Positions 6,229 to 13,160 of a stretch of 64,000 bases of DNA are shown piece after piece. The stretch comes from Macrostomum lignano (taxonomy: Eukaryota): assembly GCA_002269645.1 (NCBI GenBank), contig NIVC01001334.1:124001-188000 (forward strand). The letters run 5' to 3'. Under the pieces are notes generated by a model. That model searched no databases. It had not been told where the DNA came from and saw only the letters and a program-made list of their open reading frames with translations. Position 1 is the stretch's first letter; each line of letters opens with the position of its first letter. A program made the position numbers and the translations under genes.

Positions 6229-9198
6229 CTAGGGTCCTGGCTGGGTGTCAAACATCTTTTTGAACTCTTTCTGCTGCTGCTTCTCCAGCCTCTTGGCCTT
6301 CTTGAACTCCCTCCGTTGCTGCTTCTTGAGAGTGCGCTTCATGTGCTTGAGGTAGACGATCTCGTCACGGAGGCTCTTTCTGGAATTCAGTTGAAAAGGC
6401 ACAGACTAAATACTCACAGTAGTAACTGTGCATTATAATGGCAAAAGTAATTCAGAAAATGAAAGCTGATTACTGATCATTTGGCATTACTCTCAACTAA
6501 GAGGATTTTGCACATTTTATATCATCAAAGAGTAATGTCTACAGCAATCATTGTCATGTCTACAGCAATCATTGTCATGTCTACAGCAATCATTGTCATG
6601 TCTACAGCAATCATTGTCATGTCTACAGCAATCATTGTCATGTCTACAGCAATCATTGTAATGTCTACAGCAATCATTGTCATGTCTACAGCAATCATTG
6701 TCATGTCTACAGCAATCATTGTCATGTCTACAGCAATCATTGTCATGTCTACAGCAATCATTGTCATGTCTACAGAAATCATTGTCATGTCTACAGCAAT
6801 CATTGTCATGTCTACAGCAATCATTGTCATGTCTACAGCAATCATTTTCATGTCTACAGCAATCATTGTCATGTCTACAGCAATCATTGTAATGTCTACA
6901 GCAATCATTGTCATGTCTACAGGAATCATTGTCATGTCTACAGCAATCATTGTCATGTCTACAGCAATCATTGTCATGTCTACAGCAATCATTGTCATGT
7001 CTACAGCAATCATTGTCATGTCTACAGCAATCATTGTCATGTCTACAGCAATCATTGTCATGTCTACAGCAATCATTGTCATGTCTACAGAAATCATTGT
7101 CATGTCTACAGCAATCATTGTCATGTCTACAGCAATCATTGTCATGTCTACAGCAATCATTGTCATGTCTACAGCAATCATTGTCATGTCTACAGGAATC
7201 AGGGTGATGTCTACAGGAATCATTGTCATGTCTACAGGAATCATTGTCATGTCTACAGGAATCATTGTCATGTCTACAGGAATCATTGTCATGTCTAAGG
7301 GAATCATTGTCATGTCTACAGGAATCATTGTCATGTCTACAGGAATCATTGTCATGTCTACAGGAATCAGGGTGATGTCTACAGGAATCATTGTCATGTC
7401 TACAGGAATCATTGTCATGTCTACAGCAATCATTGTCATGTCTACAGCAATCATTGTCATGTCTAAGGGAATCATTGTCATGTCTACAGGAATCATTGTC
7501 ATGTCTACAGGAATCATTGTCATGTCTACAGGAATCATTGTCATGTCTACAGGAATCATTGTCATGTCTACAGGAATCAGGGTGATGTCTACAGGAATCA
7601 TTGTCATGTCTACAGGAATCAGGGTGATGTCTACAGGAATCATTGTCATGTCTACAGGAATCAGGGTGATGTCTACAGAAGTCGGAGACCCAAGGCCAAG
7701 CTCACGCATCAATTGTGTCCATCTCAATGCCCGCCCTAGCCAGCTTCTTTCGCGGCGTCTTGCCAGCCAACTCCTTCGTTGCCAAGATGGTGTCCCGGAC
7801 GTTCGGGTCCATTCGCTTCCGTCCTCGAACGACTGCCTTCAGCCCTGCATGGATTGTTGATGAATGATGAAATACGAAAGTAAAGACCGCTGACCTCTTT
7901 ACATTCAATGAAGCGTGTGCATGCTCTAACTAACTAACTAACTAACAAACTAACTAACTAACTAACTAACTAACTAACTAACTAACTAACTAACTAACTA
8001 ACTAGCTAACTAACTAACTAGCTAACTAACTAACTAGCTAACTAACTAACTAGCTAACTAACTAACTAGCTAACTAACTAACTAACTAGCTAACTAACTA
8101 ACTAGCTAACTAACTAACTAGCTAACTAACTAACTAGCTAACTAACTAACTAGCTAACTAACTAACTAGCTAACTAACTAACTAGCTAACTAACTAACTA
8201 GCTAACTAACTAACTAGCTAACTAACTAACTAACTAACTAACTAACTAGCTAACTAACTAACTAGCTAACTAACTAACTAGCTAACTAACTAACTAGCTA
8301 ACTAACTAACTAGCTAACTAACTAACTAGCTAACTAACTAACTAGCTAACTAACTAACTAGCTAACTAACTAACTAACTAGCTAACTAACTAACTAACTA
8401 ACTAACTAACTAGCTAACTAACTAACTAACTAACTAACTAACTAGCTAACTAACTAACTAGCTAACTAACTAACTAGCTAACTAACTAACTAGCTAACTA
8501 ACTAACTAGCTAACTAACTAACTAGCTAACTAACTAACTAACTAACTAACTAACTAACTAACTAACTAACTAGCTAACTAACTAACTAACTAACTAACTA
8601 ACTAACTAACTAACTAACTAACTAACTAACTGACTAACTAACTAACTAACTAACTAACTGACTAACTAACTAACTAACTAACTAACTGACTAACTAACTA
8701 ACTAACTAACTAACTAACTAACTAACTAACTAACTGACTAACTAACTAACTAACTAACTAACTAACTAACTAACTAACTAACTAACTAACTAACTAACTA
8801 ACTAACTAACTAACTAACTAACTAACTAACTAACTAACTAACTAACTAACTAACTAACTAACTAACTAACTAACTAACTAACTAACTAACTAACTAACTA
8901 ACTAACTAACTAACTAACTAACTAACTAACTAACTACTAACTAACTAACTAACTAACTAACTAACTAACTAACTAACTAACTAACTAACTAACTAACTAA
9001 CTAACTAACTAACTAACTAACTATCTAACTAACTAACTAACTAACTAACTAACTAACTAACTATCTAACTAACTAACTAACTAACTAACTAACTAACTAA
9101 CCCCTTGACTCACCAGCCATACAGCAGTCCCCGCCGTGCAAGTTGCAGCCAAAGCAAGCCAGACCAGTTGCCAGAGCTAGAATCCAGCTAGCCCGCAT
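6229..9198 (-). CDS. Gene A: small secreted lysine/arginine-rich protein, 124 aa, unknown family
   Basis: Exons 9198-9114 (85 nt, phase 1), 7844-7706 (139 nt, phase 2), 6379-6229 (151 nt, TAG); canonical GTGAG/CAG sites; total 375 nt. MRASWILALATGLACFGCNLHGGDCCMAGLKAVVRGRKRMDPNVRDTILATKELAGKTPRKKLARAGIEMDTIDAKSLRDEIVYLKHMKRTLKKQQRREFKKAKRLEKQQQKEFKKMFDTQPGP. Confidence 0.85.
6533..7678. repeat. 21-bp minisatellite (ATGTCTACAGCAATCATTGTC), about 54 copies, filling gene A intron 2
   Basis: Tandem units; variant polarity (CAGC units left, CAGG and AGGGTG units right). Confidence 0.98.
7925..9100. repeat. (CTAA)n microsatellite, about 1.18 kb, filling gene A intron 1
   Basis: Long CTAA run with blockwise CTAG, CTGA and CTAT variants. 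Confidence 0.98.
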
Positions 9199-9463
9199 GC
9201 TGAGACCCGTTTCGTACCTTCTATTATTATACGAGTATTTTTGTTGAGCAGTCGCGCTGATAGCAAATGAGGGACAGGATGTACTTTTTAAAACATTTTC
9301 ATAAAACCAGTCAGCTGCAGCAACTTCCAGAAATTGCTTCGAGTAATTCTAAACTGTCTATGGGCCTGTGACTTTCTTGTGCTTGCTGGCTGTCTTGAAG
9401 AGAAACCCATTAACTCGTACGTGTAAAGCAAATTTAGAAATCATTTATTTCGAAGTGCTGCAA

Positions 9464-11430: not shown

Positions 11431-11745
11431 TCTGTTGCACCGGTTAAAATTATCGGTAGGGGTAGAACAAGTAAGATCAGATACCGGATGTAGGTGCCGG
11501 TAGGGGAGATCAGAAGCCGAATGCAGCAATGGGTTCTACGGTTTCTGTGAGGGATGCTCGAGTGATCATGAGGTCACAGCGTAATGTCTATGGTCCAAAG
11601 TGTCCAGAAAGTCTCTAAAAATTCACCGATATAATGCGATAAAACCAACAGTTTCAAAGCTAAAAGTGCAGCAAAAAATTTGCCCAATAGAAGATGCTTT
11701 CAGAAGTTGAAGCGCTCTAATCAGACTCAGCGGTCGGCCAGTGTG

Positions 11746-13160
11746 ATGCCGAAGTCAAGTTCTGTAACACGCGCTCTGACACTTTTGCTAATGACCGCCT
11801 GCGCCCAGGCCTGCAGTCCTAAAGGTGAGTCCTTAGCAAAGAAGCTCATGCACAGTACATGTTTTTGGTCCTTTATGGCGGCGGAAACACATCTCCTCGT
11901 AGAGTAAACACATTTCTTCGTAAATTAAACACATTTCCTCGTAGCTTAAACACATTTCCTCGTAGCTTAAGTGCACAGTTCCTCGTAGATTAAACGCATT
12001 TTCCTCTTGACTTAAGCACATATCCTCGAAGCTTAGGCACACTTCTTAATAGATTAAACACATTTCCTCGTAGCTCAAACACACATCTGTGTGCGCTAAA
12101 CACAGTCACACTCTCATGAGAATTGGTCAACCAGAACTTTTGTAAAAAGAGTAGCAAAAATTCAAGAATTCCGCAACGCCAGACCCCATCCGCTCCGTCA
12201 CGCAGCGGTCAAGTCGGTCTTCGTAGGCCGGGCCGCAGCGCAGGCCCAGCACCAGGCCAAGAAAGCCAAATACCTGGCCGGGGAGACGCAGCCGCTCGGC
12301 CAGAAGCTGGGATTGAGCCGGGGCGGCGTCATCATGGAGAATGTCGGAGTGTAAGAGCACTTTATATATTAGTGTCTGTCTGTCTGTCTGTGTGTCTGTC
12401 TGTGTGTCTGTGTGTCTGTCTGTCTGTGTGTCTGTGTGTCTGTCTGTCTGTCTGTCTGTCTGTGTGTCTGTCTGTCTGTCTGTCTGTCTGTCTGTGTGTC
12501 TGTCTGTGTGTCTGTGTGTCTGTCTGTCTGTGTGTCTGTCTGTCTGTGTGTCTGTGTGTCTGTCTGTCTGTCTGTCTGTCTGTCTGTGTGTCTGTGTGTC
12601 TGTGTGTCTGTCTGTCTGTGTGTCTGTCTGTCTGTCTGTCTGTCTGTCTGTCTGTCTGTCTGTCTGTCTGTCTGTCTGTCTGTCTGTCTGTCTGTCTGTC
12701 TGTCTGTCTGTCTGTCTGTCTGTCTGTCTGTCTGTCTGTCTGTCAGCCACAATACCCGGCCCTCTACAAACCATCGCGCCCCAGAGACCGGCTGCGCAGT
12801 GAGATCAAGTACCTGGAGGGCATCGAAAAGCAGATCAAGCAGACCAAGAAGCAGGAGATCAAACTGGCCCAAGCCGTTGCCAAGGCCGAAGCCAAGGGCA
12901 AGGAAATTCCCAAGTGGGCCCAGAAGACCATGAAGGCGCAGGAGGCGCGGCGCGCGGAGGACCTGGCGGACGCGGCCGACAAGGCGAAGGCGGCCCAGCG
13001 AGCGGCCGAGCGGGCGGCCAGGGAGGCGCAGGCCAAGAAGGGCTTCTTTCGCAAGGGCAAGATGCCTCCGCCCAACCCTCAGCCTGTGCCGCCGCCGGCT
13101 CTCGTTGAGACGCTTCAAAAAACAGAGGAGGCGACCAAGAAAAGAAGATTTTTTGGTTGA
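11746..13160 (+). CDS. Gene B: secreted lysine/alanine-rich protein, 199 aa, paralog of gene A
   Basis: Exons 11746-11824 (phase 1), 12206-12350 (phase 2), 12785-13160 (TGA); total 600 nt. [94 protein letters not shown]...KKRRFFG. Confidence 0.83.
11890..12075. repeat. Degenerate 21-bp minisatellite (CACATTTCCTCGTAGCTTAAA) in gene B intron 1
   Basis: About 9 diverged units. Confidence 0.85.
12373..12745. repeat. (TCTG/TGTG)n microsatellite in gene B intron 2
   Basis: Direct run. Confidence 0.97.

Follow-up and report, generated by a model that had tools for sequence, protein, structure and literature searches.

Introduction

In the flatworm Macrostomum lignano, transcripts limited to the prostate have been documented as coding for putative seminal fluid proteins (PMC5977470), and the adhesive proteins of this animal have been described as well (PMC6410801). 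The two genes that are the subject of this study, A and B, lie on a 64,000-nucleotide stretch of M. lignano DNA, the whole of which is called the window in the following, and their products resemble the prostate-limited proteins in that they are small, have a predicted signal peptide, and show neither outside homologs nor a Pfam domain; however, A and B were not found in the supplements of that study, and no sequence relationship to that class is known. With cecropin- and magainin-type peptides, A and B share a signal peptide, a strong positive charge and a helix, but they exceed these peptides 3–5 times in length and are very hydrophilic, with a hydrophobic moment that does not surpass that of shuffled sequences. 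A third comparison is with the Lys-rich polycations of bioadhesives and granule condensates, as these are Lys/Arg-rich secreted proteins that interact by charge with anionic partners, and a neighboring gene, C, encodes a Thr/Ser/Pro/Ala-rich product; this analogy is one of composition only. The adhesive proteins of M. lignano are very large and repetitive, in contrast to the small A and B.

On balance, and with modest confidence, we favor the reading that A and B are expressed, lineage-restricted paralogs that act as secreted polycations and bind polyanionic extracellular partners, and it is the secretion, the pairing, the polyanion binding and the producing tissue that we infer. A and B are among the very many uncharacterized M. 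lignano genes that have no Pfam domain or human homolog (PMC5730564). If the proposed role is true, they would be a small family of secreted polycations specific to one lineage, in a flatworm for which transgenesis and RNA interference are available, and thus a convenient case for the origin and the roles of new secreted proteins. New in this work are the link between the annotated genes Mlig017295 (A) and Mlig025669 (B) as paralogs, the finding that their eL19 and TolA names are unsupported, and the recognition of a conserved three-gene cluster.

Genes A and B are transcribed paralogs

The original prediction, made from the letters of the sequence, had described A and B as an unrecognized family of small, secreted, highly basic proteins, comprising two diverged paralogs hidden by repeat-filled introns. 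The spliced genes are composed as follows.

Gene A, minus strand: coding exons 9198–9114, 7844–7706 and 6379–6229; 375 nucleotides (nt), 124 amino acids (aa)
9114–9198, minus: gene A exon 1, coding part; MRASWILALATGLACFGCNLHGGDCCMA plus the first base of codon 29; signal-peptide-like
7845–9113, minus: gene A intron 1; 1269 bp, GT..AG, phase 1; a (CTAA)n array at 7926–9101 fills it nearly throughout
7706–7844, minus: gene A exon 2; 139 nt, encodes GLKAVVRGRKRMDPNVRDTILATKELAGKTPRKKLARAGIEMDTIDA
6380–7705, minus: gene A intron 2; 1326 bp, GT..AG, phase 2; 21-mer x54.5 array at 6535–7678
6229–6379, minus: gene A exon 3, coding part including the stop codon; KSLRDEIVYLKHMKRTLKKQQRREFKKAKRLEKQQQKEFKKMFDTQPGP; predicted long basic helix
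Gene B, plus strand: coding exons 11746–11824, 12206–12350 and 12785–13160; 600 nt, 199 aa
11746–11824, plus: gene B exon 1, coding part; signal-peptide-like, AQA↓C (the arrow marks the probable cleavage site); ends with the first base of codon 27; phase-1 donor GTGAGT
11825–12205, plus: gene B intron 1; 381 bp, GT..AG, phase 1; 21-mer x9.3 array at 11885–12083
12206–12350, plus: gene B exon 2; 145 nt
12351–12784, plus: gene B intron 2; 434 bp, GT..AG, phase 2; (TGTC)n array at 12373–12744
12785–13160, plus: gene B exon 3, coding part including the stop codon; conserved LRSEIKYL helix

The locus was recovered from the M. lignano assembly GCA_002269645.1 on three contigs (L001, L002 and L003), of which L002 is NIVC01001334.1. 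The lengths of both genes are equal between the window and L002, and all six coding exons of the window are 100% identical to those of L001 and L002; among them, exon 1 of gene A, which is identical in these two contigs, terminates at the phase-1 donor GTGAGT. Use of the alternative acceptor 12747 for intron 2 of gene B leads to loss of the reading frame. Behind the LRSEIKYL helix, exon 3 of gene B encodes an Ala/Lys/Glu-rich helical extension, a Pro-rich stretch and the C-terminus KKRRFFG, and B is, as originally described, longer than A by 75 residues. The annotated 5' untranslated region (UTR) of gene B extends to at least 11644, and the read-through matches the window exactly at 11644–11745.

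Spliced A is identical to the GenBank entries PAA87082.1 and PAA69289.1 (BOX15_Mlig017295; g1 and g3), and spliced B to PAA87081.1 and PAA69291.1 (BOX15_Mlig025669; g1 and g5), with corresponding UniProt entries in both cases, and a third model of A (g2) is the L003 variant that differs in three residues. The Mlig_3_7 annotation rests on genome-guided assemblies of RNA-seq transcripts (PMC5730564), and as the models are identical to our spliced products, the junctions of A and B are transcript-supported and both genes are transcribed, which answers the question for spliced transcripts that had been raised with the original prediction. The genes were therefore not hidden, as their models are already public in the annotation and in UniProt, and the term "unrecognized" is appropriate in one sense only: as genes they were known, with identical products in GenBank and UniProt, but no known family or domain was found for them. 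The relatedness of Mlig017295 and Mlig025669 had not been noted previously.

A and B are true paralogs. BLASTP aligned residues 63–112 of A with residues 63–112 of B without any gap (E 2e-7). In Smith-Waterman comparisons with 3000 composition-preserving shuffles as controls, a test that had been named beforehand as one by which relatedness could be refuted, the full proteins gave z 10.1 and the mature parts z 9.1, and in neither case was the observed score reached by any shuffle (0/3000); the initial 40 residues encoded by exon 3 gave z 6.4 by themselves (0/3000), and there is no similarity between the leader exons (z 0.6). Intron 1 lies in codon 29 of A and codon 27 of B, in aligned columns and in phase 1 in both genes, and intron 2 lies in codon 75 of both, in phase 2 and within the ungapped BLASTP alignment, so that the proposed succession of a phase-1 and a phase-2 intron at homologous positions is borne out. 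The aligned peptide matches that had been cited are all present, and the blocks common to both proteins are K[AS]V..GR, K.LAG.T, L[AS]R.G[IV].M and LR[DS]EI.YL. Identity is about 31%, yet the reading frames are intact and the motifs discrete, and A and B have in common a signal-peptide exon, a phase-1 intron, an exon with the core motifs, a phase-2 intron and the LR[DS]EI.YL helix. When the whole window was searched by tblastn with A and B, only the reciprocal A/B match and no further members were found.

An orphan family with misleading automatic names

Searches for relatives yielded no known family, in agreement with the earlier statement that no domain could be recognized. Neither whole A and B nor exon-wise pieces of them reached the cutoff of any Pfam model, PDB sequence searches, in which A or an A/B profile served as the query, yielded no match below E 0.16, and Foldseek searches with the AlphaFold2 models of both proteins against the PDB gave nothing below E 4.6. 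An exhaustive HMMER search with the A/B profile in 1.84 billion representative proteins found only M. lignano proteins and one repetitive protein, and word-indexed searches with A and B in 5.8 billion proteins found only M. lignano entries, with 100% identity for both. As far as current databases show, A and B are a small orphan family confined to the M. lignano lineage. The repetitive protein (P0016) reached E 9e-5 through eight copies of a stretch 'NGRAGIAM..ENLEGL' and was judged a chance match. The Pfam matches below cutoff, which were KIF21A_4th (E 0.0034, 17.5 bits versus a cutoff of 33.1), FtsL, betaPIX_CC and mitochondrial L37 (E 0.99), were regarded as coiled-coil or composition noise.

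The automatic UniProt names suggest otherwise, as the entry for A reads 'Ribosomal_L19e domain-containing protein' and that for B 'Protein TolA'. On testing, neither name was supported, and both are misleading. The name of B reflects a resemblance of composition: its long helical segment is Ala/Lys/Glu-rich as in TolA, but no Pfam TolA match was obtained, and TolA is a bacterial protein, whereas B is encoded by a flatworm gene with two spliceosomal introns.

The name of A deserves more attention, as it would fit the alternative that A and B are intracellular basic proteins, for example mitoribosomal or ribosome-associated ones including a remnant of eL19, whose N-terminus serves as a mitochondrial presequence or membrane anchor. 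Ribosomes typically contain small, basic, helical proteins, A and B are very basic and helical, the tail of B is Ala/Arg/Glu-rich, and in the N-terminal part, DPN and RK.L...G.I motifs can be seen by eye, as RGRKRMDPN and RKKLARAGIEM of A recall CGKKKVWLDPN and IRKLIKDGLII of eL19. We compared A and B with human eL19 (sequence confirmed), yeast eL19 and an alignment of 11 eL19 sequences. BLASTP of A against human eL19 gave E 4.6, hhalign of the A/B profile against the 11-sequence alignment gave a probability of 0.1–0.4%, and Smith-Waterman comparisons with the human and yeast proteins gave z values of at most 2.5, with exon 2 of B showing nothing. True eL19 proteins carry both PF01280 and PF25476, and neither domain was matched up to E 10 by the full proteins or the exon-wise pieces. 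There was no eL19 chain in the PDB sequence or Foldseek results, and the cores of the models have low pLDDT (AlphaFold2's per-residue confidence measure). A and B also differ from eL19 by their hydrophobic leader exon and by lacking the whole central eL19 domain. On the BLASTP, hhalign, Smith-Waterman, Pfam and Foldseek results, an eL19 origin was rejected. The intracellular alternative draws further on the N-terminal 52 residues of B, which contain no acidic residue, but the uncharged runs of 14 (B) and about 21 (A) residues resemble the h-regions of signal peptides rather than amphipathic presequences. Because of the leader character and the negative homology tests, an intracellular or eL19-like role is disfavored, and we consider it quite unlikely.

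Leaders and helices point to putative secreted polycations

The favored reading of A and B as secreted polycations begins with their N-termini. Signal peptides have a short positive n-region, an h-region of about 7–15 hydrophobic residues, and small residues at positions −3 and −1. A starts with MR followed by ASWILALATGLACFG↓C, with CFG↓C at the probable cleavage site, and B starts with MPKSSSVTR followed by a hydrophobic run, with AQA↓C at the probable cleavage site. In both proteins, one or two basic residues thus precede an uncharged run with a hydrophobic core of about 13–15 residues, and small residues precede a Cys. The best 11-residue Kyte-Doolittle windows reach 2.15–2.32 (A 2.32) and the best 19-residue windows 1.27–1.31 (A 1.31), and the same scan detected no second hydrophobic segment in A or B. 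As the 19-residue maxima are below the usual level of membrane helices, cleavable signal peptides fit better than membrane anchors. By this heuristic hydropathy analysis, A and B look like proteins that start with a cleavable signal peptide, with cleavage likely directly before the Cys, which is in line with the proposed signal peptide ending near a Cys.

The mature proteins are indeed highly basic. Mature A has 107 aa, 12.4 kDa, an isoelectric point (pI) of 10.23 and a net charge of +16, and mature B has 177 aa, 19.4 kDa, a pI of 10.21 and a net charge of +20. Three Cys residues in A and one in B are found near the cleavage site, and neither protein has an N-glycosylation sequon. AlphaFold2 models are of modest overall confidence (pLDDT 75 for A and 67 for B), and in both of them a long and confident Lys/Arg-rich helix begins at the LR[DS]EI.YL motif, in agreement with the helical tail that had been proposed. 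In A, it spans residues 47–91 of a 96-residue query (exons 2–3, from Gly29), with mean pLDDT values of 89–98 in 10-residue blocks over residues 51–90; in B, helices were predicted at 53–90 and 96–141, with block means of 80–93 over residues 51–130. In the long helix, the fraction of hydrophobic residues is 0.58–0.67 at the a/d positions of the heptad versus 0.19–0.25 elsewhere, which is of borderline significance relative to shuffles (p 0.05–0.07 for the first 44 residues), and the Ala-rich extension of B shows no heptad periodicity.

A signal peptide, net charges of +16 and +20 and helical structure would also suit cationic antimicrobial proteins from epidermal or gut gland cells that bind, and perhaps permeabilize, microbial envelopes. 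However, hydrophobicity is very low in the best helical windows of 18 residues (Eisenberg mean of −0.9 in A and −0.5 in B), and the maximum hydrophobic moment of 0.64–0.65 is not above that of composition shuffles (p 0.08–0.09). The mature lengths of 107–177 aa far exceed those of classical amphipathic peptides, and although dibasic sites, 10 in A and 8 in B, would permit the release of fragments, no repeated peptide unit was seen. Because the helices are hydrophilic, a membrane-lytic antimicrobial role is disfavored, and we regard an antimicrobial function as unlikely.

The dibasic sites are relevant also to the idea that A and B are prohormones or neuropeptide precursors that are cut by convertases, in which case the C-terminus of B (...KKRRFFG) could yield a short amidated peptide. 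The signal peptide, the number of dibasic sites and the C-terminal Gly after RRFF in B would agree with such a processing. The putative peptide is, however, not conserved, since B ends with RRFFG and A with TQPGP, and no peptide is present in repeated copies. Conservation is seen in the core motifs and where the long helix starts, not in short peptides between cleavage sites, and because these conserved blocks are not flanked peptides, a precursor role is disfavored and appears extremely unlikely to us.

If A and B are secreted polycations as we favor, they would enter the secretory pathway and be released as proteins of 12 kDa (A) and 19 kDa (B), each laid out as a signal peptide on its own exon, a weakly structured core and a long Lys/Arg-rich helix. 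They would probably pair via the narrow hydrophobic stripe of this helix, and perhaps also through the N-terminal Cys residues, and would bind electrostatically to acidic or glycosylated components of the secretion, to microbial surfaces or to sperm. Their action would not depend on enzymatic activity or membrane lysis.

The mention of sperm leads to the possibility that A and B are seminal fluid proteins of the prostate glands, made around the stylet, transferred at mating and acting on sperm or the mating partner. A and B fit this class by their signal peptide, small size and lineage restriction, but their gene ids and sequence strings were not found in the supplements of PMC5977470, and the ratio of non-synonymous to synonymous substitution rates (dN/dS) between homeologs is about 0.3, with no sign of positive selection (see below). 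We hold a role in the seminal fluid to be unlikely. The gland secretions suggested with the original prediction, of seminal-fluid, adhesive or antimicrobial type, are candidate assignments. The ids Mlig017295 and Mlig025669 were found neither in a full-text literature search nor in the supplements of PMC7336406, PMC5730564, PMC5816591, PMC5977470, PMC5946080 and PMC12896417, which is a weak negative.

Several points weigh against the reading that we favor. Secretion is deduced from simple hydrophobicity and the −3/−1 rule, which is a heuristic, and the lack of acidic residues in the first 52 positions of B is known from mitochondrial presequences. Polyanion binding and pairing are deduced from composition only. 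The exon 2 core is poorly defined, with low confidence, in the AlphaFold2 models of both proteins, and taken alone, this core shows a weak similarity between A and B (Smith-Waterman z 3.2, 42/3000 shuffles). In addition, the constraint estimate that is described in the following comes from just 6 and 10 nucleotide differences, and the absence of orthologs may be due to the poor representation of other Macrostomum species in the protein libraries.

Mild constraint between genomic copies

The third contig, L003, carries a diverged copy of the locus, probably the homeolog of this neopolyploid. It differs from the window in 6/375 nt of A and 10/600 nt of B, and both frames are intact. Three of the changes in A are synonymous and three non-synonymous, and in B there are five of each kind, the non-synonymous ones being confined to three codons. 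This corresponds to a dN/dS of about 0.3. The aligned core (residues 27–112) contains no non-synonymous change in B and only E53D in A, and the remaining five altered codons are located in the signal peptides and in the C-terminal tail of B. The coding exons of the homeologs are 97.7–98.4% identical, the interval between A and C 94.0%, and the region upstream of B 97.4%. The pattern suggests, with small counts, a mild purifying selection on A and B. The original prediction had called the proteins fast-evolving, which the homeologs do not show, as the few changes suggest a mild constraint and not positive selection; fast evolution could account for the lack of orthologs, and so could the thin sampling of other Macrostomum species.

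These data bear on whether A and B could be transcribed young genes without a selected role. Homologs beyond the species were not found, the tails are of low complexity, there are few substitutions from which constraint can be judged, and most M. lignano genes have no human homologs or Pfam domains (Table 3, PMC5730564), all of which would be expected of such genes. On the other hand, at about 31% identity A and B have retained their frames, intron positions and discrete motifs, none of the three genomic copies is disrupted, and per site there are fewer non-synonymous than synonymous changes. We consider it very unlikely that the genes have no selected role.

A conserved cluster with gene C

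A third gene with a similar layout is located between A and B.

9464–10715, plus: gene C; coding exons 9464–9554, 10105–10312 and 10586–10715; 142 aa
9199–9463: interval of 265 bp that separates the start codons of the divergent genes A and C

As in A and B, a signal-peptide-like leader exon, which ends with GSA↓C in the case of C, is followed by a phase-1 and then a phase-2 intron. Mature C consists of Ala, Thr, Ser, Pro and Gly to 58%, and no Pfam match was obtained with C. A 142-aa gene is annotated at this position in L002, C is conserved in all three copies of the locus, and so is the order A-C-B on the three contigs (L001–L003). Gene C is not a third member of the family, since it has no similarity to A or B (z at most 0.5 for the mature parts) and lacks the motifs, and only the architecture is shared. 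Intron 2 of gene C contains a 22-mer x7.8 array (10326–10495).

The A-C-B cluster fits a co-secreted gland cargo. C may be made together with A and B, and it may share its promoter region with A, as we infer that positions 9199–9463 are a putative shared bidirectional promoter and 5' UTR region of A and C. A comparison of this interval with the region upstream of B for common promoter motifs gave just scattered 8–9-mers in inconsistent order. A further-reaching idea, which we judge quite doubtful, is that the cluster encodes a co-secreted set in which the polycations A and B, paired by disulfides or coiled coils, would condense in a coacervate-like manner with a possibly glycosylated C into glue, mucus, eggshell or a mating plug. 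If true, such a set would be a compact and genetically tractable example of a secretion system that has newly evolved, in a flatworm model open to transgenesis.

One of the scattered motifs, the octamer GTCTATGG, is enriched, with 6 copies in the window versus 1.27 expected, and 0/100 shuffles reached 6. The sites are 9356, 11586, 13358, 14027 (plus strand), 45491 (plus) and 60469 (minus), with four plus-strand copies within 9.3–14.1 kb, one of them 108 bp upstream of the start codon of gene C and one 160 bp upstream of that of gene B. The flanks of these sites have short pieces in common (AAAGTGTCC and AAATTCAC), and their alignment gave no clear element.

Repeats, fused gene models and further genes of the window

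About 15% of the M. lignano genome consists of simple and tandem repeats (PMC5730564), and the introns of A and B, which consist mostly of tandem arrays, fit this repeat-rich genome. Further arrays lie beside the genes, namely a 17-mer x17.9 array at 5620–5923, just past the 3' end of gene A, and a (CTCA)n x37 and an 11-mer x15.3 array between C and B (11059–11206 and 11269–11435). Intron 1 of gene A measures 5478 bp in L003 (10169–15648) versus 1269 bp in the window, and from start to stop codon, gene A spans 2592 bp in L001 versus 2970 bp in the window and L002. This large variation in intron length among the genomic copies is due to the tandem arrays.

Older UniProt models of M. lignano (P0003, P0004, P0006 and P0015) merge parts of the locus. 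P0003, a chimera that UniProt names '60S ribosomal protein L6', joins the antisense of exon 2 of gene A (confirmed at window positions 7679–7789, plus strand) to exons of C and to the 5' UTR and exons 1–2 of B, and P0004 is gene C fused to exon 2 of gene B with shifted frames. Positions at about 10688 and about 11706 are also involved in the fused models. Multi-gene precursor transcripts that are resolved via trans-splicing are known from M. lignano (PMC5730564), and the fused models are either mis-predictions or traces of a polycistronic plus-strand read-through with an acceptor near 11706.

Three open reading frames (ORFs) outside the cluster have Pfam matches.

14597–15130, plus: ORF with an EF-hand match (PF13405, E 3.8e-6)
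17093–18187, minus: ORF with an RNase H domain (PF00075, E 2.4e-7)
31756–33672, minus: uninterrupted ORF of 638 aa with a full-length match to PF00858 (amiloride-sensitive sodium channel, E 6e-56)

On each of the three contigs, the annotation places a gene of 256 aa directly behind B and in its orientation, and the EF-hand ORF corresponds to this gene. The RNase H ORF is probably part of a retroelement, and the ORF at 31756–33672 is a DEG/ENaC-type channel gene that appears intronless over this stretch.

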